Source: Octopus sinensis (Eukaryota). From it: DNA of 64,000 nt. Shown in pieces: positions 5,550 to 58,805 of the stretch. The stretch's first letter is position 1; the number at the start of each line of letters is the position of its first letter. The notes under the pieces were generated by a model. It had not been told where the DNA came from. It saw only the letters and a list, made by a program, of their open reading frames with translations, and made no database searches. Both the position numbers and the translations under genes were made by a program. The stretch lies in NCBI RefSeq assembly GCF_006345805.1, contig NC_043014.1, forward strand, positions 54,746,001 to 54,810,000, given 5' to 3'.

Positions 5550-6076
5550 GTGCTTATCCATGGCTTATCTATTTTTATGCTTTTGAGATTTCAACCTTAT
5601 TTTTTGTTGTAATTGCTTTATTTTCTTCTTTTTTACAATTAAGTTTTGTTTTGAGTGTTGCTGAAAAGATTCTCAAAAAATGCTTTAAATATTAAATAAA
5701 TGCAAGAATTTGATACATTTATATTTGGCAAGAAAACGATTTATCATATAGAACCTTTTTTTCTGACTTGCTAAAGAAAAAATAAAAGAAAAAAAACGTA
5801 AAGTGCGTGAATGTGGGATCATAATTGATAAAGAAAAAAAAAATTTTTTTTTTAAAAGGTCATTAACGGATTTTTGTTTGTTTTAAAATTTAACCCCCCC
5901 TCTCTCTCTCTCTCTAATTTACCTTGTATTTTTACAAATGTTCATCTGAAATATTTTATTTTTCTACACTCTTTTGTGGAGTTGGGTACCATTTCTGTTG
6001 AGTCTCGGTAAAGTATTTGAAGTTTGTTGGCTTTTGATTTAATCATCTATGTATATATATATACATACACACATAC

Positions 6077-6112
<36 letters not shown>

Positions 6113-6354
6113 TACTATATATATATATATATACATACATACACACATACTATATATATATATATATACACGCATACTATTCTTGTTGCTTTTTTCCTAT
6201 TATATATATACATACATACACATATATATATACATACATACACACATACTATATATATATACATACTATATATATATATACATACATACACACATACTAT
6301 ATATTATATACATACATACTATATATATATATACATACATACATACACACATAC

Positions 6355-6387
<33 letters not shown>

Positions 6388-6394
6388 CATCATC

Positions 6395-6435
<41 letters not shown>

Positions 6436-6554
6436 AATATACATACTATATATATATACACAAACATATATACATACTATGTATATATACATACTATATA
6501 TATATATATATTATATACATACATATATATACATACATGCGTACATACATACTA

Positions 6555-6593
<39 letters not shown>

Positions 6594-7531
6594 CCTACAC
6601 ACATTATACGTACATACATACACACATTTTATATGTGTATATATATGTATGTATGTCTATGTACGCCACACACGTCCGTTCCGTTGTCGGGGCACCTTGC
6701 CGAGATCACCCAATTGGTTGTCTGTGTTTATTTATGGATAGACTTCGTAGATGCGTATTTGGTGAATATATTTGCCAAGTTGATCAAACAAACCTTCAAA
6801 TCGGGGTGACATGGTGCCCCCTTTCCTTAGCTTTCCCTAGTTTCCATCCCCCCCTCTTTCCCTTCCCCCTTCTCTACCCTTTATGGACGTCTTTACCTTT
6901 CCTCCTCTCCCTCTTTGTCAATTCGATGAAGTGTCTCTCTCTCCCCTCGGTGCGCTTACACGAAGTGACGTCGATCGGTGCGGGAGCCGAGTCAGATGTA
7001 CGTAAGACGGAGAAGAAGGAAGTGGGGGGGGGCAGGAGAGGAACGAGGGTTCCTCGGTGGTAAAAGCACTTCACCCACTGACTCTTTTGCTCCGGTTCGA
7101 AATCGGTGCAGATTTAGCGTCGGAGATGGCTGTACGGAAGAAGAAGAAGAAGAAAGTTGATGGTGCCAGGGTGGAGAGAAATTAGAAAGTAGTAGCTGTA
7201 GTAGCAGTAGTCTTTTCTTGAAATAGGCACAAGGCCGGAAATTTTGTTGGTCAGGGAGTTTAGTCGATTACATTGACTTCTGCGGGCGTCTAACACGTGT
7301 GTATGCATGTATATATATATATATGTGTGTGTGTGTGGTGTGTATGTATATATAGATATGTATGTGTATATATATATATATGTATTTACAGCAAGGAGCC
7401 AGAGAGCCACTTGCTAGAGAGGTCATAAGCTCTATGTATATTATGTGTGTGTATATATACACATATACACACACATACATATATATATATATACATGTAT
7501 GTATATTATGTGTGTGTATATATACACATAT

Positions 7532-7562
<31 letters not shown>

Positions 7563-7610
7563 CATATATATACATGTATGTATATTATGTGTGCGTATAT
7601 ATACACATAT

Positions 7611-7641
<31 letters not shown>

Positions 7642-7857
7642 CATATATATACATACATATAGTATATATATACATATATATATATACATATATATACATA
7701 TATATACACATATATACATATATACATATATATTATACATATATATATATATACATATATATATATACATATATATACATATATATATACATATATACAT
7801 CATCATCATCATCATTTAACGTCCGCTTTCCATGCTAGCATGGGTTTATATATATAT

Positions 7858-7900
<43 letters not shown>

Positions 7901-8049
7901 TATATATATTTATAATTATATATATATACATACATATATATATACTTTATATATATACATACATATATATATATATACATATTATTATACATAATAATAA
8001 TATATATATATATATACATACATATATATATATATACATATATATATAC

Positions 8050-8080
<31 letters not shown>

Positions 8081-10531
8081 CACACACACACATACATACA
8101 TTTATATATATACATATATATATACACACACACATACATACATTTATATATATACAACACACACACACACACACATATATATAATGAGACTTTACACGAC
8201 TGGACTAGTTTTCTGTTATCCGCTTCAGAATTCGCCAGAGTTGAAATATCCAAACGAATTCCGCCTGAAGGCCACAAGACTAGTCTGGTCTTGTAATAGT
8301 CATCATTGTCTTAGATAAATGCATCCACTCGATGTATTAATTAGGTATGGTTTGGTGGGTGTCGTATCGGGAATACATGAAATTTGTGTGTGTGTGTCAG
8401 CCTTTCTCCTAATATGTTTAAGGCAGAAAATTTGGCAGAAGGGAACAGTTTTTTTTACATCTGTCCCAAAAGGATGAAAGTCGAAGTCGGCGAAATTTGA
8501 GGAAAATTTATATCAAGTGGATATAGTTTTAGTTCGTTGCTTCCTAGTTAGTGCCTTGGTTCGAATCCGTTGTGGGCATTTCGTTGGTTATTTTAAGCAG
8601 TGTATTATTTAAATCTGCGCGCCTCGGTCTATCTGGCTGTCGAGGTACCAACCAGGCTCCGGTTGGCTGGCGCAGCATCCAAGACTGTGTTTAAATTCAT
8701 TGTCTCATTAACGGCAGCACGTCCCTAACCCGAGCCTCAGCTCCCTAAAGATCCGGGCCCCCTGGAATACAGAAACCTATAAGAAGGCCTCTACATGGTC
8801 TTTCAGTGTGCACGAAACAGCAATCAAATTCTAACTCACGCTCCACTATCTTGGTTCAGAAGGAATACATTCGATAATGTAATTGTAAATTCCTCGTAAA
8901 AAAAATAATAATAATAAACGGGATGGTCTCAAGAGGATTGTCTTTAATAACTGTTCGATCACATCTGACTTGAAGCTAAACAGTATTTATGTTCATTATA
9001 GAATCCACGTATTTCGCTATTTTCCATAATTAATCACACTGATTAAGAGCAGTTTATGTTTTTAATCTTTTATGGTTATTTAAACCCCAGCCGACCACGT
9101 TTCATGCTGTAAGACTCATAATTATTAATATCTAAATTATTAACACGTTGGAGGAGAGTAAAGAGCCAAGTGGATCCGGAAAAGGATTTTTTTAATCTTT
9201 GAACATTAAGACAAAATAATGGCAAGCATTTTTATCCTACGCCCCTACCAATTCCTCTACTGGCGATCTCTCTCGTACGCTCGAAAATGATGGCGATTTT
9301 TCTAACATCGACATATAAGGTGTCACGTTTCTTTAAGGGATGGAGGTATGGATCGGATTCTGGTGGTCGTGGTCGATGGAAGACAACATTGTACTTGCAC
9401 GATGTGGGTTTTGAACCTAGAACGTCCAATAAAGGAAACGTATTACTTAATCTATCGACTCAGTGTCTTCTGAACGGTAAAGCTGACGACATCGTTTGAC
9501 GGATGTGAACTCCTGAAATGGAACGGGTCCCTTATGTAAAGATGGTGACGACCTGTATTTAATGGGGGCTCAATTTATCTGCAACCAACTGGTTCTATAC
9601 TTCTACAATACACAAAATATCTTCAACAATTCTTTCGATACAATTCCTAATAATATTCACTTATAGGCGCAGGAGTGGCTGTGTGGTAAGTAGCTTGCTA
9701 ACCAACCACATGGTTCCGGGTTCAGTCCCACTGCGTGGCATCTTGGGCAAGTGTCTTCTGCTATAGCCCCGGGCCGACCAATGCCTTGTGAGTGGATTTG
9801 GTAGACGGAAACTGAAAGAAGCCCGTCGTATATATGTATATATATGTATGTGTGCTTGACAAGCGATGCTGGTGTGTTTACGTCCCCGTCACTTAGCGGT
9901 TCGGCAAAAAGACCGATAGAATAAGTACTGGGCTTACAAAAGAATAAGTCCCGGGGTCGATTTGCTCGACTAAAGGCGGTGCTGCAGCATGGCCGCAGTC
10001 AAATGACTGAAACAAGTAAGAGAGTACTTTTTAAACCTCGAATTGCTATGAGGGTCCACTTGAGTAAAAATAGGAACGAAAGGGGTCCCCTAGGCTAGAA
10101 GATAAGTGGGAATCCCTGGTCTAGACCATTCCGCCCGCTTTAGCTCCGATCATAATTGTAATTCTAATAAAATATCATTTTTCCATCGTGCTTCTAATAA
10201 TGATTCCTGACAACAGAGCATATACGCGGCCCGTCGAATTGCTAAAGATAGCAGTCAAATTTTTCTCTCATCATGCCCTGCGATCGGCTGACATGTATAG
10301 AATAGCTACCAAATCCACCCTCATGTTACACTGAGAAAACGAAGGACATACCGAACAATATAGTCTTAGGGTATAGGCATGGCTGGAATGCCCTTCAATG
10401 CAGGCTTACTCCATCGAGGGTGGGTGGGTGCTAATCAACACATAGGTTCTGAGAAACTGATGTGTGTGTGTGTATTTTCTGTTCTTTTACTTGTTTCAGT
10501 CATTTGACTGCGACCATGCTGGAGCACCACC

Positions 10532-10571
<40 letters not shown>

Positions 10572-11018
10572 TATATATAGTTATAATATATGTATGTATA
10601 TATATATGTTATATATATATATATATATGTATATATATGTAGTATATATATATATATAGTATGTATATATATGTATGTATATATATAGATATATATGTAT
10701 ATATATGTATGTATATATATATATAATATATATGTAGTATATATTGTTATGTATATATATATCTATATATGTATATATATGTATGTATATTATATGTATA
10801 TATATGTATGTATATATATATATATATATGTAATATATGATGTATATATATATATATATATATGTTATATATGTTTATGTATATATATATATATATATGT
10901 ATATATATGTATGTATATATATTATATATATATATGTATATATAGTCTTGTATCTATATATATAGATATGTATATATTGTATGTATATATATATATATAT
11001 ATATGTTATATATGTATG

Positions 11019-11049
<31 letters not shown>

Positions 11050-11431
11050 GTATGTATATATATATATATATATGTGTATATATATGTATGTATATAATAT
11101 ATATATATATGTATATATATGTATGTATATATATATTACCTTATGTATGTATATATATGTATGTATATATGTATATATATATGTATGTATATATATGTGT
11201 GTGTATATATGATTTCTTTACTACCCACAAGGGGCTAAACAGAGAAGGGACAGACAAACGGATTAAGTCGATTATATCGACCCCAGTGCGTAACTGGTAC
11301 TTATTTAATCGGCCCCGAAAGGACGAAAGGCGAAGTCAACCTCGGCGGAATATATATATATATGTGTGTGGTGTGTGTGTGTATATATATATGTATGTGT
11401 GTGTGTATATATATGTGTGTGTGTATATATA

Positions 11432-11582: not shown

Positions 11583-14500
11583 TCGTGTAAAGACGGTGGT
11601 GGTATTAGTTAAGAAGTCTCGTTTCAACGTCAGTGCTTTTGGCTGGAGATAAAAGTGCACTTCTTAGGCAATGACACTATCGTTGTTTTTTGCCAAGGCG
11701 CCGTACTAGACAAGTACTTGGAGAGGAGTGCCGCCGCCGCCGCTCGCTCGCTTGCTGCAGTCCTTCCTTTCTTGTGACCTGTTGCCCACATCTACCTATT
11801 TCTTTACTAGCCACAAGGGGCTAAACATAGAGAGAGGACAAACTAGTACAGACACACGGATTAAGTCGATTACATCGACCCCCAGTGCGTCACTGGTACT
11901 TAATTTATAGATGTTGCCCACAGCTACCGTTATGAAAACCTTGGACAATAAAAACATACACCGACTGCTTGCCTCGTGGCAGTCCTCACTGAAAGGGACG
12001 GACCCATGATCAGAGTTAGACCTAACTACATCGCTCAGTTCAAGGTATTTCCCTTCTATTTCTAATTGCTTGTTATTATTTAGCCCCTGGTCACTGGTGG
12101 CGGGACAGGCTTATTATGACAGAAGCCATGAGCATCTCTCGGCCCGCTAGTTTTTCAGCCATCGTTATGCCTTCGGTCACAAAACCCCTTTGGGATTATT
12201 TTCGAGGCTGATAGGAATTGTGTTCGGGGGTTGCTGTTTCTTTCCCATTATCTCGATCTATGATAGTCGGACCGTTTGACTAACTCTGTAGTGTTGGCCA
12301 TATGTGTATCATGCCTCTTCTGCAACACCTTGCTATGACGACCACCTCAACATTAGAGTTCTCTCCACGTTTTCCAAAGCTGCTACAATATCCATTCCGA
12401 TCGCTGGTCTCTCCATATCTCTCTCTACCACCATCCACCCCACCACGATTATATGATTCATTCTCTTTCAATCGGTGAAACCACAACGCTTTTGGAGTGC
12501 ATGTGTGTGTGTGTGTGTGTGTGTGTACATGCGTGAAATATAATTAAGGAGATATGTATGTATGTGTGTGTGTATAAAAATATATGTATGCACATAGGAA
12601 TATATATGCATATATAGGTTTCAAATTTTGGTACAAGGCTAGCAAATTCGGGAGAGGGGTAAGTCGATTAGATGCATGTATGTGTATGTATGTATATATG
12701 TATGTATATATATATATATAAATGTATGTATATATGTATGTGTATATATATGTATATATAAATATATTTATGTGTGTGTGTATATATATAAATATGTATA
12801 TGTATGTATATATATGTGTGTGTGTATATATATATATGTGTATGTATATGTATATATATGTGTATGTATATGTGTATATGTGTGTGTGTATGTATATATA
12901 TGTATATATATATATGTGTGTGTGTGTGTATATATTTCTTTGTATGTATATATGTATGTATGTGTATATATATATATGTGTGTGTGTGAATGTATATGTA
13001 TAGAATATATATACATGTATGTATATACATATATATATATATATATACACTCTCGGAGTGGTTGGCGTTAGGAAGGGCATCCAGCTGTAGAAATTCTGCC
13101 AGATCAGATTGGAGCCTGGCTCGCCAGTCCCCAGTTAAACCGTCCAACCCATGCCAACATGGAAAGCGGACGTTAAACGACGACGACGACGATGATGATG
13201 GATGATATAACCATTTTCAAAATCTGGCATTGAAGGGTCACATTTTCGAAGAGATACCTGTGCTTTTTCTGCAGTGACCCTGGCAGTGCACAGTAGCTGA
13301 GTTGCATCTAGTTGCGTAACCTCTTGATCAAATTCTGCACTTCAATGTCTGACAGAGATTCAGAACAAAAACCCAGATCAAGATAACCATGCCGGTATCT
13401 TTATAGAAATGCTGTCGTGGTAATTACAAGTCTGTGCCTCAAAGGAACCTGATGATGGCTTATCGTCTGTACGTGTGTGTTTCTGTATACGTTCACGTAT
13501 ATATATATATGTGTTGGTTGTGTATTGCAATGTATTCCTGTATATGTAATTGTGTATATGCATATACATGTGTGTGTGTGTGTATATACACAAATTTATA
13601 AATATATTTGACATAGTTCAATCTTTTTTGAAAAGTAAAAATTTTGCATTATGTAGCTTGTTATTCTGTTTATGTGAACATTTTTCTGGTTGAAATACAC
13701 CGAAAAATGGCGACACAGCAGTCAAGAAATCGTAAAAAATAGGGATTTTCATAGAAAAAAAAGCACCTTTTTGATGTAAATAATTTTTGGTGTTAACATG
13801 GTCCGATTTGAATTTTTTCTTCTACGGAAGGAAGAGCAAGCCTTCTTCTGTCATACTCTCAATTTTGATCAACTTGCGCCGCGGGGTCTTGGAGGAGATG
13901 GTGTTAGTTGAAGGCTACCAAACTTGCCACACACACACAGACAGACAACCTCAGCTTTATATGTATAGATACATATATCCAGCATGGCCCTTAGTGTGTT
14001 GGCTGAAACACGCAAATATGATTGTACTTGTGTGCATGTTTGTGTGTGAAATAGCTTTTTACCAGTTCCCGTCTGCTAAATCCAGTCCCCTAACAAGAGG
14101 GCTGTGGTAGAGGACAAGTTGTCCAAGAGGGTGACAGAGCTGGAATCGAACCTGATAACATATGGCTGGGGAGCAAACTTGTCTAAACACAAAAAGTGGC
14201 ATGCCTGTGTGGTTATGTATAAAGTATATATATATATATATATATATCATCATCATCATCATCATCATCATCGTTTAACGTCCGCTTTCCATGCTAGCAT
14301 GGGTTGGGATGTGTCTGTACATATACACTTGTGTATCTTTATATCATCATCATCATTTTATGTCCGTTTTCCATGCTGGCATGGGTTGGACGGTCTGACA
14401 GGAGCTGGCGAGGGGGCCCCACCAGGTTCCATTGCCTGTTTTGGCCTAGTTTCTACTGTCGGTTGCCCTTAACACTAACCACGTGTTTTGGTGTGTGTGT

Positions 14501-19300: not shown

Positions 19301-22300
19301 TCGGGGCGAATTTTCAGGCTCCAAATATCATCCCCGAATTAAGCAGACGAGTCGTTCGGTTCGCTCCCGCTGCGCGACCTTCCCACTTCCTTCCTTTTCT
19401 TTTTTTTTTTTTTTTTTTTGTCTAGAATTACATTGCACAATGTATCTTTTTTTCTTTTCGTATTTTTTTCTTCTTCTTCTTCAAACCAATAACAGGGGTG
19501 TGTTTTGAAGAAGCTTTTGGCTGCCATTTCTAGCAGGTCGATGCCTTAATTTCCCCCCTCCCCCTCTCTCTCTCTCGAAGCGTTTGGCTGCCATTTCTAG
19601 CAGGTTGATGCCTTAATTTCCCCCCTCCCCCTCTCTCTCTCTCGAAGCGTTTGGCTGCCATTTCTAGCAGGTTGATGCCTTAATTTCCCTCCCTCCTTCC
19701 CTCTCTCTCTCGAAGCGTTTGGCTGCCATTTCTAGCAGGTTGATGCCTTAATTTCCCTCCCTCCCTCTCTCTCCCGAAGCGTTTGGCTGCCATTTCTAGC
19801 AGGTTGATGCCTTCATTTCCCTCCCCCCCTCTCTCTCTGCTTGTGGGAATCTGAGCTATTTCGTGTCGACAGCCAAACACGGCTGACGAATGTCTTCTTC
19901 ACATCAAACGCAACAACAACAATAAAGATATGACGTCTTTCTCTTTTTAATGAATAGAGAAGAAGAGAAACAAAAATGTCGAAGAGAGAGAGAGTCGTTT
20001 GACGTCTTCCCGTTTCACTTTGTCTCCTCCGCCAAAGAAAGCCAGACATAAGTAAATAAGCGAGCGAAGGAGGGGGGGAACCTTGACCCCAGTGGTTCCA
20101 ATTTGTCACGTTTTTAAGGCGAAACGCATTCGGAATATATTAGGTTATTTCCCGGCAGCTGAAAATAAATTTACTGTAAAAAAAAAAAATTATTCTTTTG
20201 TCTTAACGCAGAGCCCGTTTCTTATCCGTGTGGAGTGGTTTTGTTAAATATTTTGCTTTTAATAAACACAAAACAAGGTGTGGCGACCGAAACAAACAGG
20301 AACTGATCTTGTCCTTGTTAAGAGTTTAAAAAACATTTTTGTTTTTCACTGAGTGGTGGTCAGTAATTAGCCTGGGGCTCCCCGACTTCTGTCTAAGTAA
20401 TATATATTTCTTTACTACCCACAAGGGGCTAAACACAGAGGGGACAAGCAAGGACAGACAAAGCGATTAAGTCGATTCCATCGACCCCAGTGCGTAACTG
20501 GTACTTTATTTATCGACCCCGAAAGGATGAAAGGCAAAGTCAACCTCGGCGGAATTTGAACTCAGAACGTAACGGCAGACGAATTGAGTTCAAATTCCGC
20601 CGAGGTTGACTTTACCTGAATTAATTTGATCGGATCCTTTCTTATCCCCTAATCTCTGTGTTTTCACCACCGCCGAAACCTGAACTCGGGGTTTCACGGC
20701 GCTCTATTGCTTCCACGGTCCACGCGTTATTTCCGGGGTTAACTTTAACCTCACGTCCTTTCGGGGTCTGCGAAATATATTACCAGTCAAATATTGGGAT
20801 CGAAGGCATGGACTGATCGATTCTCTTGAAAATTGTTGGCCTTGTTGTACCTGGCAGAACCGTTGGAAGGTTGCAAAAAAAAAAAGTTTTGATTTCAAGT
20901 TCCGCTGAGATCAACTTCGCCTTTCAACCTTTCGGGGTCGGTAAAATAAATTACCACTCAAGTATCGGGGTCGATGCTATCGACTGGTCCCCTCCACCGA
21001 ATTCAGGCCCTGTGCTTTACCGCGCCGGACCAAAATATTTAGCGGCATCTCGTGAGTTCAAATTCCGCTTAAGCTAACTTTGCCTCTCATACTTTCGGGG
21101 TCAATAAAATAAGTACTAATCGAACAGTGGGGTCAATGTAATCGACTTAATCTCCCCCCCTCCGCCGCGAAATTGCTGGCCTTGTACCGAAATTTGAAAC
21201 CAATATTGTCTTTTATAGGTATGTTACCAAATGATGTCTTTAGTTGGTTTCTTCCCCAGTTCTGACAACAACCCGAGTCTATTATTCCTCCAGTTTCTGG
21301 GGGTTTTTTTTTTATGTTGTTACAGTTCAGGAAAGGGCAACATTTATTTTATATCGTCATCTTTTTGTGGGGGACATGAAGAGGCTATCGTCGCCGTGAC
21401 TTGGGCCTTGAAACCTCGGCACCGAGCGATCAAATGGCGCCAGTACCGTTTCGCACCTTACTTCCTCGATTAATTTTTCGTTTGGCACCTGACAGTTTCA
21501 CTATTTCGTCTTTTCTGAACACTTCTGCTTCTTTCTTTTCCATTTTACGCCCACATTCAAAGATAACCGATCACATAAGTCTTTGTGGTTGCTTGTTCTG
21601 CTAGAAATAGAACCAAATCAACCTCATTTTAATGGTTCAACATCCCAGATGATCCTGTCAACCCCCCCAAGTTAAGATAGATTAGAATTTGTCAGTTTTA
21701 AATGCGACTTTGTTTATCTGTAGACCCCTTCCTGCGCGAAGAGACTTATGGTCGAAGATATTCCGAACGTGGCCACCTCGTCATTTTTAGGACATTTGAG
21801 GCGTTTACTCAGTCTTTCCCCCTTTTTACGATCATGGCTGTGATTAGTCATTCCACACAGAAGACATCTTAACATGATTTGACGGAAGCCAATGGAGGAA
21901 TCTCTTAGTGGTCGTTCGACACACTAGAAATAGCAGCCAAATTACCTTTTCCATCTCCCTCTCCGTCTTGAAAGAAAGGAAGAGAGGGACGCGTTAAATA
22001 AAATAATGTAGTCCTCGGTACACAGCATCTGTAAGGAGAATGAAATGGCACCCCCATGCCTTTTATCACGGTTCTGCTCACTCAAACAAGGGCCAGTACA
22101 CTTCGCTCAAAATTAAGAAAATCTTTTAAATAAATTATCAAACTGTAAAAGAACTTGGTTTCCCGAACCCCAGAAGGATGGGGTTTGTGTTTTTTTTTTT
22201 TTTTCTCCTGAGAACTTCCTATAAGTGACAGAGACATGGTGACCCATTTTCTCTGGTTGGGGGAGGCAGGTGTCTAAAAATAAGCGACAGGTCCGAGACA

Positions 22301-27743: not shown

Positions 27744-30700
27744 CACATATATACGACAGGCTTCTTTCAGTTTCCGTCTACCAAATCCACTCACAAGGCT
27801 TTGGTCGGCCCGGGGCTATAGCAGAAGACACTTGCCCAAGATGCCACGCAGTGGGAATGAACCCGGAACCATGTGGTTGGTTAGCAAGCTACTTACCACA
27901 CAGCCACTCCTGCGCCTTTCTGTTTACAAAATCTTTTTTCTTTTTCTAAGTTTGTTGATTTTTAATCCTCAGAAAATGTCAGTGTGTGTGTTATATAACG
28001 TAAATTGATTATTAAAGCTTAGACTTATTTCAATACGAAATTCCGTGTGTTTTCCCACGTCAATGGCAGTGGGAAATAGCATTTACTTTGAGGAGTGTAA
28101 CAACCATTGCACTGATTGTTAAATCATTTCTGCCGAGTGTGACCAAACTCAGTGGAGTTGGCCTCGGTCACGCTTCTTTTGTTATTTAGTGTGTGTGTGT
28201 GTGTGTTGGACGATGACAAAGCTGGAACTGGTCATAAATGATGTCAAAATAAATGTAAACTTTTTCTACGTCTATGAGAAAGAATAAGTCGCAGGTTGAA
28301 ATAAAAGTGCTGGGGTCGATTGGTTCATCTAAAGATTCTCCATGGCGGTGCCCCAGTATGGCCGCAGTTAATATAGTTTGTTCCCTACATCTGACTCTAC
28401 GTACGGCACATAACTATTTCTCCCTTAAAAATGCAAAAATTACATTTCCGAAATTATTTCTCTATTTTTAATTTATTTTTCAAAGTTATTTTTTAATAAC
28501 GATTACTCAGACTTCAGTTTTTCTAATTCTCCCAAATTTTCGTTTTGTGATCATAAAAGGAAAGAATATACCAGTACCTTCATTTAGAGATGAAACGAAA
28601 TAAATAAATAACGGGAGAATGCTTACTTAAGGGAGTTTAGCTGCTATTTCTAAATGTCAAGAAGCCGCGCAGTTGTTCCTGTGGTTAAATACGAGACGGA
28701 AGTTAAGCTAAATAAATATTTTCAGCTTTTTTCCATTAAAAAATGTGGTTATGTAAATTCTAGGAGCCAAAAAAATAAAAATCATAATTTCATTTTTTTT
28801 TTTTTTCGAAAGAATATTTATTGCGGACGCTGTATAAAACGCAAAGCGAATCTTGTGTCCATAGGTTGCAGTTTGTTACCATCCTGGGACGCCCGTTGCC
28901 TTATTTCGACAGGACATTTATGCTGTTAAAAAAAAAAAAGAAAGACCGTTGTTGGCCTCGAAACCCACAGCCGTCATTTTCGAATTCATTTTTTTTTTTT
29001 GCAAATCATTCCAATTCTAAAACATGATAGGTTTGTTTCTCTTCGCTTTATTAAATTATTTAATTTGTTTTTTTTTAATTCTTTATTTTGTTTGTGTCAA
29101 CGTAGTTCGTGTCACTGACCGGGTTGACTACAAAATAAGAAATGAAATACTGCTGTGTATATATATATATATATATATGTGTGTGTGGGTGTGTGTTTAG
29201 AAATGGCTGTCTCACTCGTTTCATGACATAATTACTTATTCCAGTTTTGATCGCCGGCTCAGTTCCTTCTCTTTGGGGGTCTTTTCCTGCCTCTTTTTAA
29301 AATGTCAGATTTGGGGTAAACTTTACATTCTCGCATTCCCCCTCTCCTATTTACCTTTCTCACAAGGCCTGGGACTTCGAAGGACAGACATCCCGACGGT
29401 TATTTTAATTTTGTCGTTCACTCTCGATCGTTATTTTTAACTACCAGTCGTCGTACAAAAAAATCCTCACTTATAATACAATAATGTTTGTGTGTGTTCA
29501 AAATCCTCGTTATTATACGACTTTGCTTTTCGTCCTTTCAGGTTCGATAAAACCCACCAAATCCCTCGACTTGCCCCCTTCTCCTCTTAGGGTTAGAAGA
29601 ATCGTTAAGGACACCTGGCAGAATGTTTACCGTCATTCCGTCCGCCCTTACGTTCTGAGTTCAAATTGGGTCGAGATCGACTTTGTCTTTTCGGGGAATC
29701 GATAAAATAAATACTAGTTGAGTACTAAAGGTCAATGTTATCGACGAACCCCCTGCCCTAAAATTTCAAGCTTTGTACCTATCGAAGAAAAGATTATTAT
29801 TATTATTGTTTGGGTTACCTTGTCCGACGGTCGGATTTTCGCACCTGGTGAAATTTTCGATAAGAAAAATTATTTTTGTACTTAATAACCTTTGATATAA
29901 AAAGTCATTGACCATAACATTATTTCTAGAGTCTATGAAATCGTTCGTCATGATAGTTGTTAGTTTGGGGCTACCAGCTTGTGTCTGGAAACCTGTTTCT
30001 TTGCCCTCGGTCTTGAGTGAAGAAAACCCGAAATCAAAAAAACATTCAAACCATTATTCCGTGCTTTTTTCTAGAATACAGAAAACCTCTTCATTTTCCT
30101 TGTTTATTTATTTTAAGATAAGGAAGGAGTGAATTAAGGAAGGTCTTCCTGCTATTTCTAACAGGGCGACCAGTCATGAACACTATCTCGAGGCATGTTG
30201 ATGCATGCGATATCTCCTGCTGTTTATTTGAATGTTTCTTTCGTAGTCCCATCGCCCCATAATTAATGATTGTTTATCGGTGACTAATGTAATCGTTTGA
30301 GTTTTTAATAAATGGTGTTTCACACAGGAAGCACAAGTGACCAGGCCAATCCCGTCTGCAGTGAAAGTCTCGTCTCCAGTTACAAAACATTATTATTTAC
30401 ACGGAACTAAATTACTTGGCAGTTGGGATGTCTGTTTTGGTTTAGTGATGAAGTGAGCATGTTCGAGTTCTATCCCGCCTCAACTAAATTGGAAAGGCAA
30501 ACAAACAAGGTAGAGAGTGTTAGGACTTAGATAGGTGGAACTTGGTCGATTTAACCTATTTCTTAATTGCCCAGAAGGGGCTAAACACAGAGGGGACAAA
30601 CAAGGACAAAGGGATTAAGTCGATTACATCGACCCCACTGCGTAGCTGGTACTTAATTTATCAACCCCGAAAGGATGAAAGGCAAAGTCGACCTCGGCTG

Positions 30701-31437
30701 AATTTGAACTCAGAACGTAACGGCAGACGAAATACCTATTTCTTTATTACCCACAAGGGGCTAAACATAGAGGGGACAAACAAGGACAGACAAACGGATT
30801 AAGTCGATTATATTGACCCCAGTGCGTAACTGGTACTTAATTTATCGACCCCGAAAGGATGAAAGGAAAAGTCGAACTCGGCGGAATTTGAACTCAGAAC
30901 GTAACGGCAGACGAAATACTGCTTGGCTTTTCGCCCGGCGTGCTAACGATTCTGCCAATTCGTGATTACAAATGACTGGGGATGCCTTTCATGGCATTCA
31001 GGGTCGGTAACTAGTCGCAACAATCTGATTTTAAATGTTAGGTTATCTCCCTTAGAGAGGGGTTTGTCTAAATGCCTATGGGTGATGGATGGAGCAGCGT
31101 ATTTTTAGGTTGTTTAAACTAAAAATGTCAGTGTTGTTGTCCGTTTATAAACAAACTCGAAACATCACGCCATGGTCCACTTTTTAAGCCGACAACAATA
31201 TGAAGCGTTGTTTGGCTGATTATTAGTAAACAGCTGTTATCTTCTTTGCCGTCACAGGCTTCTTCTAGATGATAGCCGGATGTAAATGAAAAATCCCACG
31301 AGAGGTTTACTCTCTTTCCACCAACACATAATTATGTTTTCGTTTACTCTCGTACATGTCTGTAATTCCTCTTACTTCTTTGTCTTCCCCGAGTTTTGCT
31401 CTGTCACATCTAGCTCGTTTAGGAGTGTCATATATAT

Positions 31438-31485
<48 letters not shown>

Positions 31486-31582
31486 CGTATATATATATAT
31501 ACACACATACGTATGTGTACATACATCTATACGTATATCTATATATATATATATACATACGTATATATATATATATACATAC

Positions 31583-31626
<44 letters not shown>

Positions 31627-31792
31627 GTATGTGTACATACATCTATACGTATATATATATATATTATATATATATATACACACATACGTATGTGTACATA
31701 CATCTATACGTATATCTATATATATATATATATATACATACGTATATATATATATACACACATACGTATGTGTACATACATCTATACGTATA

Positions 31793-31823
<31 letters not shown>

Positions 31824-37800: not shown

Positions 37801-40800
37801 TATTTAAACTGTACTTAGTTTAGTTGGTGGACTGCCAGTTTACTTCTATAAAGACAGTAGTGTGATGTGAAACGGATTTGACTGCTGTTTCTAGCATGAA
37901 GGTAGTCCATGTAGAGGCACCTTTGTTGTTTCTGGAAGTTGAACTGACCGATCAACACTGTAAATTCAGTCCGGTGAATCGGCCTTTGACATTCTTTTAT
38001 ATGTATATATCTATTTATGGAGGCGCAATGGCCTAGTGGTTAGGGCAGCGGACTCGCGGTTTCGATTCCCAGACCGGGCGTTGTGAGTGTTTATTGAGCG
38101 AAAACACCTAAAAGTTCCACGAGGCTCCGGCAGTGGGTGGCGATCCCTGCTGTACTCTTTCTTCTGTTGGCCTGCTCGCTTAGCCAGCGGGGTGGCGTCA
38201 TTCGAAGGCTAAAACAATGCGAATGCATTGTGACCAGCGATGTGTAACAACATCTGATGGTCTGGTCGGTTACGTGATTACGTGATATCCATTTCTACAT
38301 GATAGCTTACAACTCCGATATGAGCAATGCCATTGCTTGAGTGTTCTCCTGGCACATGGCTTCATCCCGTCATGGAATTGGTCATTGGGTGCTTCAACCT
38401 TTTTCAGTTTATAGCCAGCCATAGAAAGCGATGCCTCTACCTGAAGTCTTTCAAAAGATTTTCTTTTTCTCCCTCATTTATCATTTCCCATTGCTTATCT
38501 TTAATGTTTGTGGTTCCTTAAATTTCAGAAGAAAAAAATAAAGAAGGAGATAAAGAATGAAGTAGAGTCTCCAATCAAGGGACGAAAAAAGAAAGATAAC
38601 GAAGAGCAGCAGACCGTTTGGAAATGGTAAGTTCCTTGGATTTTTTGGAAATGGTATGTTCCTTGGATTTTTTGGAAATGGTATGTTCCTTGGATTTTTT
38701 GGAAATGGTAAGTTTCTTGGATTTGTGTCGTGTTTCATACTAGTGGCCAATGTCTCTTTGTCTCTGTCAGAATCCACTGATGCAAAAAAACAACCCCAAA
38801 GTCAAACTCAGTTGCTATTGAAAAGATTTTGGGGAGACAATAAAATAATTCTCCACTTTTCCGACCTGATTTTTTGGATTACTTTCTGCTCCCAATCTGT
38901 CATGTGATGGGTCTTTGTTCTACATTGCCTTATTTTACCTATTTCTTTACTGCCCACAAGGGGCTACACACAGAGGGGACAAACAAGGACAGACAAACGG
39001 ATTAAGTCGATTACATCGAACCCGAAAGGATGAAAGGCAAAGTCGACCTCGGCGGAATTTGAACTCAGAACGTAGCGGCAGACGAAATACTGCTAAGCAT
39101 TTCGCCCGGCGTGCTAACGTTTCTGCCAGATCGCTAGGAATAGGTGCCTGGCTGCTAGGAATAGGTACCAAATCATCAAACTCTGACTGGCCCACATCCT
39201 CCTATCCAGCCGGAGATGCGGTGGTTGGAGCTTGAGAGCTGTTTTCAGTACAGTTTACTGTGGGGGTCAACTGCACGGGGAAATGTCTATTTGTATAGTT
39301 TGGCAATAAACATGGCTGTGTGGCTTTAAGAAGCTTGTGTCCCGACCATGTGGTCTTGGGTTCAGTCTCACGGCACGGCACCTTGGACAAATATCTCCTG
39401 CCACAGCTCTAGTCTAAAACTTTTGTGGGTGGATTTGGTAGGCAGAAACTAAAAGAAGAACTAGGTGTGTGTGTGTGTGTGTGTGTACACTTGTGTAGAC
39501 ATCATGTGGTTGTGGATGGGTTTCATCGTCATGAAAGGTAGGTTGTTTATGTCCAGTGTTTAACGTAAAACATATTCAGCCTTGCAAAAATATTGCCTTA
39601 CTTGGAAACTGTTGAGGGTCAATGACAAGACGGGTGTGTGGCCATGGAAAATCTGTCTAACCCATGCAAGCATGGAAAAGTGGACGTTAAGTGATGATTG
39701 TTTATTTATCATTTTAGGTGGGAAGAAGAGAGAAGAGATGATGGTGTGAAATGGACTTTCCTTGAACATAAAGGGCCATTGTTTGCCCCAGATTATGATC
39801 CTCTACCAGATAATGTAATTTTTAAATATGATGGTGAGTTATTTATTTATTTAATGTTTTTTTCTTCTTGTTATTATTTGTCTGCTGTAACAGTAAATAT
39901 TTGATAGCTTTGATTTTTTTTATCCGCTTTTATCAGAATTGTCATTGGCTCAGTCCACTTGTCCGCATAATGGCCAACCATTTTGGTCCGTAACAATTTC
40001 AGCTGTAATTATGCCATTTGTATTTGGCATGTTGTTCCAACTGAATCTTCTCTTGAAACAATAACCAGAGTTTCTTTTGGAAGACGAGTGTCATGTCTCT
40101 ACAGAGAAGCTCCGTCCAGAGAGATTAATGACCGCTCCAGCTGTTTACGGTCAAGCAATGGCAAACACTGTAGTTATCGTCATCGTTTAACGTCCGCTTT
40201 CCATGCTAGCATGGGTTGGACGGTTTTGACTGATGGCTGCACCAGGCTCCAATCTTGATCTGGCAGAATTTCTACAGCTGGATGCCCTTCCTAACGCCAA
40301 CCACTCCAAGAGTGTTGGTTAAAACTGAATTATGATCATTCTGTGGTCCCAACTCTTGAGAAAATATGATGGTATATTCAGGACAAGACTTGCAAGTCAT
40401 AGCACGTGTGTGTGTGTGTGAGTGTGTGCTTGCTGGTTTGTTATGGGACTGAAATACCAATTGACCAACAAGACACGTGTGTTCATGTCTGCCTTGCTGA
40501 AAAATATTTGTCATTCTTAATGTTGTCGATATCAGTTCAAGATGTTTGTAGTGTGATAAATCAAGAACCAACTTGACCCTTGAGCCAATATTTAGATCTT
40601 TTCTTAAAAGGGGTCTTACATAAAAAGTCATGAGGGAAACTTTTATTATAAATATCATCATCATCATCGTTTAGCGTCCGCTTTCCATGCTAGCATGGGT
40701 TGGATGGTTCAACTGGGGTCTGGGAAGCCAGAAGGCTGCACCAGGCCCAGTTTGATCTGGCAATGTTTCTACGGCTGGATGCCCTTCCTAATGCCAACCA

Positions 40801-41326: not shown

Positions 41327-41391
<65 letters not shown>

Positions 41392-44300
41392 CCTCTCCCT
41401 CTCTCCCTCTCTCTCTCTCTCTCATATTAAGGCAGCAAGCTGGCAGAATCGTTAGCATGCCGGGCAAAATGTTTTGCAGCATTTCTTCGGCCTTTATGGC
41501 CTGAGTTCAAATTCTGCTGAGGTCAACTTTGCCTTTAATCCTTTCGGGGTCGATAAAAGAAGTACCAGTGGAACATTGGGTAGAGAGTATTATTATTTAT
41601 TGATTGATTGATTGAGCTGGGTCCAAGTGTTCAAGTTGCTCTCAGACAGAATCAGCAAGACTCGGTTTAGAACAAGTAGAATTCACTTGACAAGCTGCTC
41701 TACAGTTTCTATCTATTCAGTCTCACTTCAAGGTATTGGTCAATAGAAAATGACATTTGCCCCCCAAGATGCTCTGCAATAAGACTGAATGCAGGACCTT
41801 GTGATTGCAAAGTGAACCTGTTGACCATTTGGCCATACTGTGGCAACCATTCCTGCCTCTGACTTTGGTATGGTTGTTCTATTGAGGGGATGTTTTGTTC
41901 TTTGGTCAGAATTTAAACTTTGGCTGTATTCACATAGAACTTACGTCTCCCAGATTTTAAAAAAAAATGCAACATGAATAGGCGCAGGAGTGGCTGTGTG
42001 GTAAGTAGCTTGCTAACCAACCACATGGTTCCGAGTTCAGTCCCACTGCGTAGCATCTTGGGCAAGTGTCTTCTGCTATAGCCCCGGGCTGACCAATGCC
42101 TTGTGAGTGGATTTGGTAGATGGAAACTGAAAGAAGCCTGTCGTATATATGTATATATATATATATAAGTGTGTGTGTCTGTGTTTGTCCCCCTAGCATT
42201 GCTTGACAACCGATGCTGGTGTGTTTACGTCCCCGTCACTTAACGGTTCAGCAAAAGAGACCGATAGAATAAGTACTGGGCTTACAAAGAATAAGTCCCG
42301 GGGTCGAGTTGCTCGACTAGAGGTGGTGCTCCAGCATGGCCGCAGTCAAATGACTGAAACAAGTAAAAAAGAAAAAAATTTTTAAATGAATGTTATCAGT
42401 CAGTAATATTACCATGTAGCCTTTTTTGCTTTGAAGGGAGAACAAACTTGGATTTGCTTCAACCATCCAATGGCTGTCAACCACCAACACATTTGTCCTT
42501 TCAGAGTTGAATTAAATAAATACCAATCAAATATTGGCTTCAATATAATCAACTACTCCTCCCACAAAATCCCAGCCATTGTCCCTGGATTAGAAAAGGG
42601 TTATTAAACGAAAATGAGTTGAAACCCTGCTAGGGTCAGCTTCACCTTCCATCGCTTTGAGGTGAATAAAATCAAAAACTGGGTTTCATTGGATCTTTAG
42701 TCACCCCATATCTTTACATTCCAAGTTCGAATCCTACAAAGGTCAGTGTTGTCTGTCAGCCCTTTGGGATCAATAAATTAAAGTACCTGTCAAGTACAGG
42801 TGTCAGCCCGCTCAAATTGCTGGCCTTGTGCCGAAATCAGAAACCATTATTAGCACTTTGACATTTAACCCTTTAATGTTCAGATTACTCTGTTAAATAT
42901 AATACTTTTTCACTCAAATTGTTTTGAATTAATCATGCATTATCTTGTAGCTTTGAGGTTTCAGTGATGTGATTGTTTATTTTTAGCATGACATTGTAGG
43001 TTAGGTGTGAGAGGCTAGAAATGGCCAGTTTGAATATAAAACTTTTAGAATATTTGGGCCGGATATGGCCAGTTTAAACACTAAAGGGTTAAGCCAAGTA
43101 TACCCAGCAAAAATATTTTGTCTGTTTTATGTTCAAACCAGCAGAATTCGGCCCCTCACACCAACCTACAATGTTACGTCATCAAAATTTCAAAAACTGG
43201 GAGATAATCCATGTTTAATTAAAAACAATGTGAATTAAGCACAATACATTTGATAGGGTAATCTGAAGGCTAAAAGGGTTAAGAGGAAATTTGCTTTGAT
43301 TTTCATTTCAGGTTATGTCAGCTTCTGAGAAAGAAACCCTTTCAGATCTGAAGAAATGTGATTTCAGAGACATGCATGCTTTCTTCACTGAACAGTCAGA
43401 GGAGAGGAAAAACAGAACTAAAGAAGAAAAGCTGGTAAGAGGACTTTTCAGATTTTCAGCTTAATTTCATTAAAGACTAATTAAAACTGGAGTGTGATGT
43501 AAGCCCGTTTAGTAAATCTGGTGCAATGCACCTGTTTGTTAGCTTCAGTCGGTATTTTCTTGCTTGGAAGGAAAGTCTAAATAGTAATTTGGCAAGGCCG
43601 GCTGTCTTTCCTTCTATCGTGAGGATCGTTATCATTTTCCATGCTGGGTGGCACGTAAAAAGCACCAACCGATCGTGGTCATTGACAGCCTCCCCTGGCA
43701 CCTGTGCCGGTGGCATGTAAAAAGCACCCACTACACTCATGGAGTGGTTGGTGTTAGGAAGGGCATCCAGCTGTAGAAACACTGCCAGATCAGACTGGGC
43801 CTGGTGCACCCACCTGGCTTCCCAGATCCCCGGTCGAACCGTCCAACCCATGCCAGCACGGAAAACAGACTTTAAATGATGATGATGATGACATGTCAGT
43901 TCCAGCCGCAGCTCATCATTTCTTTTACGGCTGTCATCCTGACATCAAACCTCACCATTTCTTCCTGTACCTTCTTTGCTCTTTCTCTTCCGTCATTTGA
44001 CACCTTTTATGCATCCATTCGTCATCTTTCATAGACATCATCTGTGCACACCTGTGCACTTTACATCTAGTGTATTTCATGTCATCGTCATTTTAACATC
44101 TACTTTCTCATGCTTATATGAGGCAGACGAGAAGAAGCTGGGATAGAATTTTCTACAGCTGGATGCCTGTCCCGTCGCCAACCGCCTCTTGTTTCCAAAT
44201 CATGCAATAATCTCCCAATCGAACAGCAGACAGCCTGCACAGGCTTTATGCAAAGAGTTGGAGACAAACGAGGGAGAATTTTCTTTACAAAATCCACACA

Positions 44301-56890: not shown

Positions 56891-58419
56891 GGATATTTAT
56901 TTTTTTATTTATTTTGTCTGCCTTCACATTCTAATTTCAAATTCTGTCAAGGTTGACTTTGCCTTCCATCCTTTTGGGGGTTGATAAATTAAGTACCAGT
57001 TGAACACTGGGGGTCAATATAATCGACTCATACCCTCCCATCCACCCCCTCCCCCCGAACCAAAAATTCAAGATTGTTGTTTATCATTTATGCACAAAAA
57101 TTTCTTTGATTTTGCAACATTCACCATCGAAGACTGTTGTGTGTCTGTCAGTGTTGAATGGACAGGAATTGTGTGTGTTTTTAGTAACACTCTTACAATC
57201 ATGAGTGCAGCCCCCAAACATTAACCGAATGTGATGTTTGTTTTTTGAAAATGGTTTGAATTAATCCTGCATCATCTTGTAGTTTAGAGATTTCAGTGAT
57301 GTGATTTTTCAGTTTTAGAATGTCATGGTAGGGCTGAGGTGAGAGGCGAGATCTGGTCAGTTTCAATATAAAACAGGTTAAATATTTTGGCCGGTTTGAA
57401 TGCTAAAGGGTTAAACCACCCCCATTTCAATTTGTTGCAATCTAATAACCTCTCAGCGCTTACCAACCTGTCATGGAACTCTGAATTTCCATAGGTATAT
57501 TCTTTGATGCGTTCTTCAATTCAGCGTGTGTGTGTGTGTGTGAGTTTGTAGATACTCAGACACACACACACTACAGCAGTGGGTTCTCGACCTTGTGGTC
57601 TGTGAACCCCTGGTGGTCTGATAAGGTAGTGCTGGTGGGGATTGGAGGTCCGTGAACATGTTAAGCTGACGGACCTTTCCATACCCTGGGGTCTGTGGGA
57701 AAACTCATTTAAATAAAAGGGGTGGCCTTGGTACTGAAAAGGCAGGGACCCACCGTGCTGGCACATTATCTTAAAGGTGTGGGAAAGGATCATGTACGTC
57801 GTCATCATCGTTGTTTAGTGTCCCCCACCACCACCACCATTTCCGTGTTGACGTGGGTTGGACTGTTTGACAGAAGCTGGCACTCATCAACATCATCATC
57901 ATCATCGTTTTTCAATGTCCGTCTTCCATGCGTGCATGGGTTAGACGGTTCACAGGAGCTGGCCAGGTAAAAAAAAAAAACACTACCCTATGCTACTTTG
58001 CCTGTTTTGGCAGGGTTTTTACGGCTGGATGCCCTTCCTTGCACCAACCACTCTGCAAATATTCTTAATACAGATTTTTTTTTTTCTGTTGGAGGAAGTA
58101 AACAAACCCTGGTGGCTGTTGTGTGAAACTATCAAAGAATAAGGGAGATAATTCCCAGAAATGATTTCCTTTCTCTTCTTTTGAGTTGAGTGTCGCTGCA
58201 TCTCTGCCTTCTCCTGCAGCTTCAGTCTGACCAATGTCTTGTCAATGAATCTGGAAGGTGGAAACTGAAAGAAGCCTGCCATGTGTACATCTAGGTGCCA
58301 TCATTTAACTTCCATTTTCCATGCATGGTTTGGATGGTTTAACAGGAGCTAGCAAGCCGGAGGATTGCACCAGGCTCTACTCATCTGTCTTGGTGTGTGT
58401 GTATATATTTACATATATA

Positions 58420-58805
58420 TTTCTTTATTACCCACAAAGGGCTAAACATAGAGGGGACAAACAAGGACAGACATAGGTATTAAGTCGATTACATCGACCC
58501 CAGTGCGTAACTGTTACTTAATTTATCGACCCCGAAAGGATGAAAGGCAAAGTCGACCTCTGCGGAATTTGAACTCAGAACATAAAGACAGACGAAATAC
58601 CTATTTCTTTACTACCCACAAGGGGCTAAGCATAGAGGGGACAAACAAGGACAGACACATGGATCAAGTCGATTACATCGACCCCAGTGCGTAACTGGTA
58701 CTTAATTTATCGACCCTGACAGGATGAAAGGCAAAGTCGACCTCGGCAGAATTTGAACTCAGAACGTAACAGCAGACAAAATACCGCTAACGTTTCTGCC
58801 AGCTC
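58420..58805 (-). mobile_element. Family-B SINE head-to-tail dimer
   Basis: Same junction as the 30.7-kb dimer, at 58591-58611. Confidence 0.85.

Follow-up and report, generated by a model that had tools for sequence, protein, structure and literature searches.

Reports of minisatellites lying across exon–intron boundaries in human genes go back to the late 1980s, and the resulting architecture, a 5′ splice site repeated within the intron, is already known from F7, CBS, IFI6, LMNB2 and PDGF. Here we report the same architecture in the type IB DNA topoisomerase gene (TOP1) of Octopus sinensis, within a 64,000-nucleotide stretch of genomic DNA (hereafter the window) where a 27-bp unit occurs four times in tandem over the boundary between coding exon 6 and intron 6. 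There is nothing unusual in this array as a genome feature: a minisatellite of recent origin has by chance come to lie over a splice donor. We consider it probable that it is near-neutral or slightly deleterious, its extra copies being mostly silent or low-use pseudo-donors and not a dedicated regulatory element. It also provides a natural experiment: the gene is essential and single-copy, and among three closely related octopuses its strong donor is present in 1, 2 or 4 copies.

The closest described systems are those of Borensztajn et al. (2006), in which the first unit of the minisatellite covers the exon–intron boundary and the donor is thus repeated in the intron (PMC1557585). In intron 7 of F7, where a polymorphic 37-bp unit is present in 5–9 copies, splicing takes place at the most upstream site alone; the pseudo-sites work once the upstream ones are mutated, the addition or deletion of units has no effect, and pseudo-sites strengthened up to a consensus value (CV) of 91 still fail to compete (PMC1557585). 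LMNB2 and PDGF use their authentic site only (PMC1557585). For the variable number of tandem repeats (VNTR) of CBS, reports cited in PMC1557585 link the repeat with reduced enzyme activity and describe one substitution in a downstream repeat that blocks its use. A second line of work concerns engineered substrates from the Eperon laboratory, in which two sites with high complementarity to U1 are both occupied (Hodson et al. 2012; PMC3413131).

A 27-bp array over the exon 6 donor of octopus TOP1

A tblastn probe located, on the + strand of the window, a gene for a type IB topoisomerase, and its spliced model, with 19 coding exons in the window, matches residue for residue the 898-aa protein common to Octopus vulgaris and O. 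sinensis (P0116; XP_029647425.1 / CAI9738008.1). This protein carries the Pfam domains Topoisom_I_N (PF02919), Topoisom_I (PF01028) and Topo_C_assoc (PF14370), together with the C-terminal motif SKLNYLDPR, which we take, from human TOP1, to be the site of the active-site tyrosine. By homology, the gene is a eukaryotic type IB DNA topoisomerase, TOP1. The features around its sixth coding exon are the following, a slash marking the splice boundary:

38529..38626, + strand: TOP1 coding exon 6, 98 nt, residues 306–338, 78% purine (spliced model equal to P0116)
38617..38724, + strand: tandem array of 27 bp × 4 (Tandem Repeats Finder score 195, 96% matches; unit sequences read)
38627..39717, + strand: intron 6, 1091 nt (spliced model)
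38627..38632, + strand: donor 1, authentic, atg/GTAAGT, the frame-keeping donor, U1 duplex −9.1 kcal/mol
38628..38630, + strand: in-frame TAA, codon 339, in the mRNA upon use of any downstream donor (frame reading)
38654..38659, + strand: pseudo-donor 2, atg/GTATGT, +4 A>T, U1 duplex −5.3 kcal/mol
38681..38686, + strand: pseudo-donor 3, atg/GTATGT, unit same as unit 2, U1 duplex −5.3 kcal/mol
38708..38713, + strand: pseudo-donor 4, atg/GTAAGT, +8 C>T, 81 nt 3′ of donor 1, U1 duplex −9.1 kcal/mol
39718..39833, + strand: TOP1 coding exon 7, acceptor tttag/GTGGGAAGAAGAG (spliced model)

Tandem Repeats Finder returned one tandem array at the boundary, with a period of 27, 4.0 copies and no indels. 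The four units stand head to tail, the first of them made of the last 10 nt of exon 6 and the first 17 nt of intron 6. Direct reading gives tttggaaatg/GTAAGTTCCTTGGATTT for unit 1 (exonic part in lower case), tttggaaatg/GTATGTTCCTTGGATTT for units 2 and 3, which are mutually identical, and tttggaaatg/GTAAGTTTCTTGGATTT for unit 4, so that the unit types follow one another in the order A, B, B, A′. Such an array cannot be explained as a chance match. An earlier examination of the window (the sequence-only reading) had noticed GT donors recurring with a 27-nt period at 38627, 38654, 38681 and 38708, and both the repeat finder and the direct reading recover these four positions. High-identity minisatellites (period of at least 10) cover ~1–2% of the window, so that the overlap of one of them with 1 of the 18 TOP1 donors is unremarkable by placement alone. 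On either side of the 27-bp unit stands a G, and the unit itself begins and ends with T; the breakpoint shows no microhomology that would be informative, and the array may have originated by slippage or by unequal exchange.

The reading frame gives the four donors unequal consequences. The exon 6–exon 7 junction reads TGG AAA TG/G TGG GAA, encoding VWKW/WEEER, and the final W of WKW is residue 338 of 898. Past donor 1 the frame continues as TGG TAA, and only donor 1 spares this TAA; because the stop is in frame, donors 2–4 would all end translation after residue 338, exactly the stop at codon 339 and the 338-aa product that the sequence-only reading had predicted.

Donor strength was expressed as the duplex energy with the conserved 5′ end of U1, taking the 18 real donors of the TOP1 gene as reference. 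Donors 1 and 4 reach −9.1 kcal/mol and donors 2 and 3 reach −5.3, their pairing being lowered by the +4 A>T change, the real donors having a mean of −7.5 kcal/mol (sd 2.2) and values between −3.2 and −10.6. A T at +4 is also found in one of these real donors, that of exon 15. All four array donors are thus plausible 5′ splice sites, and donor 4 equals donor 1 in U1 pairing.

The sequences leading up to these donors are less alike than the sites themselves. The sequence-only reading had described an identical exonic context of 8 nt; the common upstream sequence is real and in fact 10 nt long, but it diverges beyond that point into purine-rich exon for donor 1 and U-rich repeat for the others. 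Over the preceding 40 nt, purines make up 75% of the exon before donor 1 and 45–50% of the repeat before donors 2–4. Exon 6 as a whole, besides its 78% purine, has 12% T and 11 GAR motifs, whereas the 81 nt between donors 1 and 4, which would become exonic if donor 4 were used, have 46% purine and 47% T, outside the composition range of all 19 coding exons (purine 0.48–0.79, T at most 0.29). Donor 1 is at a normal transition from exon-like to intron-like sequence and donor 4 is not, a boundary that would favour exon definition at donor 1.

Two further properties of the array were considered and rejected. The predicted RNA structure (minimum free energy −32.9 kcal/mol) is no better than that of shuffled sequences (z = +1.38), which disposes of a fold hiding the pseudo-donors. 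As to an overlapping RNA gene on either strand, the window holds no Rfam match at gathering score, and near the array there are chance-level matches only (E = 0.39–0.62).

Copy number across cephalopods

Orthologous TOP1 loci were compared in five cephalopods, with one assembly per species. The unit is present in 4 copies in O. sinensis and 2 in O. vulgaris, and in a single copy in Octopus bimaculoides, Argonauta hians and Sepia pharaonis. The exon end gtttggaaatg/GTAAG and the position of the intron are kept in all five loci; the repeat is not. Its two O. vulgaris units are identical, with GTAAGT in both and a donor spacing of 27 nt, and the single donors read GTAAGTTCCTTTGATTTGTATCG in O. 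bimaculoides, GTAAGG in A. hians and GTAAGA in S. pharaonis. As these last three species each have one copy, the single copy is ancestral and the array young and lineage-specific. The comparison places the duplication in the O. vulgaris/sinensis lineage, after its split from O. bimaculoides, and indicates that copy number has changed again since O. vulgaris and O. sinensis separated. The earlier suggestion that the array might be a VNTR is thereby borne out between species, with 1, 1, 1, 2 and 4 copies.

Substitutions in the extra copies were set against those in the rest of intron 6, which outside the array amount to 5.2% between O. sinensis and O. vulgaris and to 10–11% between these and O. 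bimaculoides. With ~2.6% per lineage over the 81 nt of extra copies, drift would yield ~2 substitutions on the O. sinensis branch, where we observed two independent events, +4 A>T (then duplicated, in the internal units) and +8 C>T (in the last unit); for the extra copy of O. vulgaris, 0.7 substitutions are expected and 0 were seen. These counts match the expectation from drift, and no sign of selection appears in them. Selection on the +4 A>T change of units 2 and 3, by parallel with CBS, was also considered, and with two events it is indistinguishable from drift. Regulated unproductive splicing would further be expected to leave a conserved element, and O. bimaculoides, A. hians and S. pharaonis lack the array, whose copy number differs between the sister species.

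The intron itself is variable in size, measuring 1091 nt in O. sinensis, 1159 in O. vulgaris, 798 in O. bimaculoides, 480 in A. hians and ~470 in Sepia, and the O. sinensis–O. vulgaris alignment of intron 6 contains 196 gapped columns beside its 5.2% of substitutions.

Other repeats occur in and around the gene. An interspersed, ~184-bp element resembling a short interspersed nuclear element (SINE) occurs at least 23 times in the window, complete or in part, in both orientations and including two head-to-tail pairs; among the copies are 30554–30919, 58418–58785 and, inside TOP1 intron 6, 38937–39090. It has no Rfam match at gathering score. A (TC)47 microsatellite at 41330–41423 begins 24 nt 3′ of the exon 8 donor (41307) and is a second simple repeat very near a TOP1 splice site. 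Upstream, a CA/GCA-rich imperfect minisatellite at 1672–2065 (units of ~38–40 bp, ~9.5 copies) ends ~250 bp before the first TOP1 coding exon (ATG at 2309), in what is likely the promoter or 5′ untranslated region. The 28.6-kb intron 2 (4128–32768) contains many (TA)n or TA-rich arrays of 300–700 bp each, for instance at 6048–6593, 7452–8154, 10532–11196, 12685–13047 and 31430–31822, as well as a minisatellite of 67 bp × 4.9 at 19510–19838; its arrays give many long spurious open reading frames (ORFs).

Donor usage and rival explanations

The junction peptide WKW/WEEER is found in all annotated isoforms, namely X1 and X2 of O. sinensis, two of O. vulgaris, three of O. bimaculoides and that of Argonauta, and also in one Logan transcript from another octopod. 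The annotated isoforms all require donor 1 and differ only at their N-terminus, which is weak evidence in favour of that donor. Searches of the protein database at the transcript level added little. A 153-aa query spanning the junction matched only short TOP1 fragments, at no more than 71% identity and none of them from cephalopods, and is uninformative on donor usage. A chimeric query, combining the N-terminal 338 aa with two spurious ORFs crossing the array and aimed at products ending in TVWKW followed by a stop or at independent contigs, returned only three full-length cephalopod TOP1 clusters, and exact look-ups of the array-spanning ORFs of 83 aa (+ strand) and 98 aa (− strand) returned no record; transcript or read-assembly ORFs of this locus from O. 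sinensis or O. vulgaris seem to be missing from the database, so that these negatives say little on splicing. A 338-aa Logan fragment from a Sepia cluster (P0249), considered as a truncated product, was rejected, being a C-terminal fragment whose matching length is coincidental.

Some features of these records stand apart from the array. The annotated isoforms of O. sinensis, O. vulgaris and O. bimaculoides (P0240, P0241, P0237, P0238) have alternative N-termini beginning MDGFSF or MI-DLKLKV, or start at an internal MKDGH. The NCBI name ‘mitochondrial-like’ looks automatic, since nuclear TOP1 typically has a long N-terminal domain rich in K, S and H, as this protein does. A 92-aa Logan fragment from a Sepia-like cluster (P0247) reads ALYFIDK and then VHFFLVFTLKLVLISYF, which resembles intron read-through after the equivalent of octopus exon 12, by intron retention or in a pre-mRNA contig.

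In the reading that we favour, a boundary-straddling 27-bp segment would have undergone a small tandem duplication in the O. vulgaris/sinensis lineage, followed by later expansion. Because the extra copies would have been added on the intron side, the original donor at 38627 and the purine-rich exon in front of it would be untouched and would still form the productive site. The three downstream copies would then be intronic pseudo-donors, probably silent or used at a low level, and any transcript spliced from them, carrying TAA at codon 339, should undergo nonsense-mediated decay (NMD). By analogy, the F7 precedent, in which repeated donors of equal or greater strength are silent, lends support to this course of events. 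TOP1 is an essential gene, and an allele spliced mostly to donor 4 would therefore not be expected to persist.

Several points weigh against this reading. Donor 4 matches donor 1 in U1 pairing and is 81 nt nearer the acceptor; in engineered substrates, the preference for the intron-proximal site grows beyond ~30 nt and is ~100% at 45 nt or more (PMC3413131); and in IFI6 and CBS one or two pseudo-sites are also used constitutively (PMC1557585). The annotated isoforms are of limited help here, since predictors pick donor 1, the sole frame-preserving site, whatever its read support; donor usage in O. sinensis TOP1 is here inferred. The 4-copy state, finally, comes from one assembly only (GCA_006345805.1), whose O. 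sinensis chromosome record CM016876.1 shows 100% identity to the window over 55,217 bp. As strong proximal donors win in the mammalian model substrates, appreciable unproductive splicing could still occur at this locus, and the corresponding rival is a leaky set of poison donors: a substantial share of pre-mRNA would be spliced from donor 4 (or from donors 2 and 3) in O. sinensis, and some in O. vulgaris, and lost to NMD, so that copy number would set the productive TOP1 output as a passive dosage effect of the kind proposed for CBS. Donor 4 is stronger than the gene mean, donors 2 and 3 lie within the range of real donors, the sites are unmasked by RNA structure (z = +1.4), and both the proximal preference and the pseudo-site use of CBS and IFI6, with the lower enzyme activity linked to the CBS VNTR in work cited in PMC1557585, point in this direction. 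A strict proximal rule, however, would bring productive mRNA almost to zero and cannot hold fully, since an essential gene would be left without it; the extension to donor 4 is intron-like in composition, equal-strength pseudo-sites are silent in F7, and selection on the copies was not detected. The 338-aa truncated product is also absent from the protein database, itself seemingly devoid of O. sinensis and O. vulgaris transcript ORFs. On balance, we regard substantial leakage as rather unlikely.

Other explanations give the array a function or deny its copy number. Splicing enhancement by intronic U1-binding elements and by competing 5′ splice sites was reportedly described by McCullough and Berget in 2000 and by Hicks and colleagues in 2010, and U1 particles bound to the pseudo-donors might in the same way help to define exon 6 and speed splicing at donor 1, with a mild benefit. 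Such enhancement is cited in both PMC1557585 and PMC3413131, and the donors of the adjacent exons 4 and 5 are weak (−3.8 and −3.2 kcal/mol); but donor 1 is strong already, adding or removing units left F7 splicing unchanged, and close relatives without the array splice the same exon normally, all of which makes an enhancer improbable. That the reference copy number is an artefact of assembly or polishing, the true number being 2 or 3, or that it comes from a rare allele for which the sequenced animal was heterozygous, would agree with the single assembly and with the ORF look-ups and chimeric query having found no independent array-bearing contig. We consider this very improbable, since the array is just 108 bp long, below the length of a single short read, its ordered distinct substitutions (A, B, B, A′) are not produced by collapse or expansion errors, and two copies stand at the corresponding position in the independent assembly of O. 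vulgaris. The autoregulatory poison cassettes known so far show deep conservation, and an autoregulatory switch, in which the TOP1 level would influence by feedback which of the four donors is chosen, for instance through its reported SR-protein kinase activity, seems scarcely credible for an array that is missing from O. bimaculoides, Argonauta and Sepia, varies between sister species and bears no selection signal. Mammalian TOP1 does phosphorylate SRSF1, and its loss alters alternative splicing (PMC3771450); more SRSF1 shifts splicing to the intron-proximal site (PMC3413131), here the non-productive one. A newly evolved negative feedback built on these elements, TOP1 raising SR-protein activity, hence donor 4 use, a stop and less productive mRNA, with 1, 2 and 4 copies setting the loop gain, deserves equally slight credence. 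The proposal of the sequence-only reading that copy number tunes productive TOP1 splicing or drives autoregulation consequently finds no support, given the absence of the array in three relatives, its neutral-like substitutions and annotated isoforms that all use donor 1; its fallback, a neutral product of slippage, is the best-supported reading.

Comparison with known reiterated and competing donors

The octopus array resembles F7 in design. Both have a first unit spanning the boundary (4 nt of exon and 33 nt of intron in F7, 10 and 17 nt in the octopus), a donor repeated in the intron and a variable copy number, and most F7 pseudo-sites, which are intrinsically functional, would also lead to a premature stop. 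The two differ in scale and strength: the weak F7 site (TGG/gtgggt, CV 74) is present 5–9 times, and the strong octopus site (ATG/GTAAGT, with 7 contiguous U1 base pairs) 2–4 times. F7 moreover is polymorphic within humans, whereas the octopus variation so far is between species only, and exclusive use of the upstream site, shown by experiment in F7, is a prediction in the octopus.

The 31-bp VNTR of human CBS is said to have been studied by Yang and colleagues in 2000 and by Lievers and colleagues in 2001. As far as its description in the citing paper goes, this VNTR at the border of exon 13 and intron 13 likewise repeats a donor, the octopus +4 A>T may act like the CBS substitution that blocks a downstream repeat, and its link between copy number and enzyme activity corresponds to the tuning idea of the sequence-only reading. 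A difference is that CBS has, by the same description, 15–20 repeats and two pseudo-sites whose use was demonstrated. In IFI6 (6-16), LMNB2 and PDGF a minisatellite also repeats the junction, with outcomes ranging from the authentic site only (LMNB2, PDGF) to the addition of two pseudo-sites (IFI6); the sizes are very different from ours (a 100-bp unit in 10–15 copies in LMNB2, an 81-bp unit in 16–18 copies in PDGF, 25 pseudo-sites in IFI6), and all of these are vertebrate genes.

A likeness also exists with alternative splicing coupled to NMD, as in the poison exons and sites of SR-protein genes, where the alternative choice adds a premature stop and should trigger decay, as use of the downstream donors would here. 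Known regulatory cases of this kind are deeply conserved and respond to their own product, whereas the octopus array is species-specific, with no mark of constraint.

The Eperon substrates, with equally strong 5′ splice sites competing for one acceptor, are the remaining relative. They are artificial globin or adenovirus constructs assayed in HeLa extract or cells, unlike the octopus locus, and their outcome is opposite to that of natural F7, so that the upstream rule of F7 and the proximal rule of the engineered substrates make opposite predictions for octopus TOP1. The mammalian model substrates switch to the downstream site at a distance of ~30–45 nt; of the octopus donor spacings, one lies below it (27 nt, in O. 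vulgaris) and one above (81 nt, from donor 1 to donor 4 in O. sinensis). The 1-, 2- and 4-copy series bears on whether a loss of productive transcripts that is built into an essential gene can be tolerated, and it could test outside vertebrates which rule applies, that of F7, where the most upstream site wins, or that of strong duplicated sites, where the intron-proximal one does.

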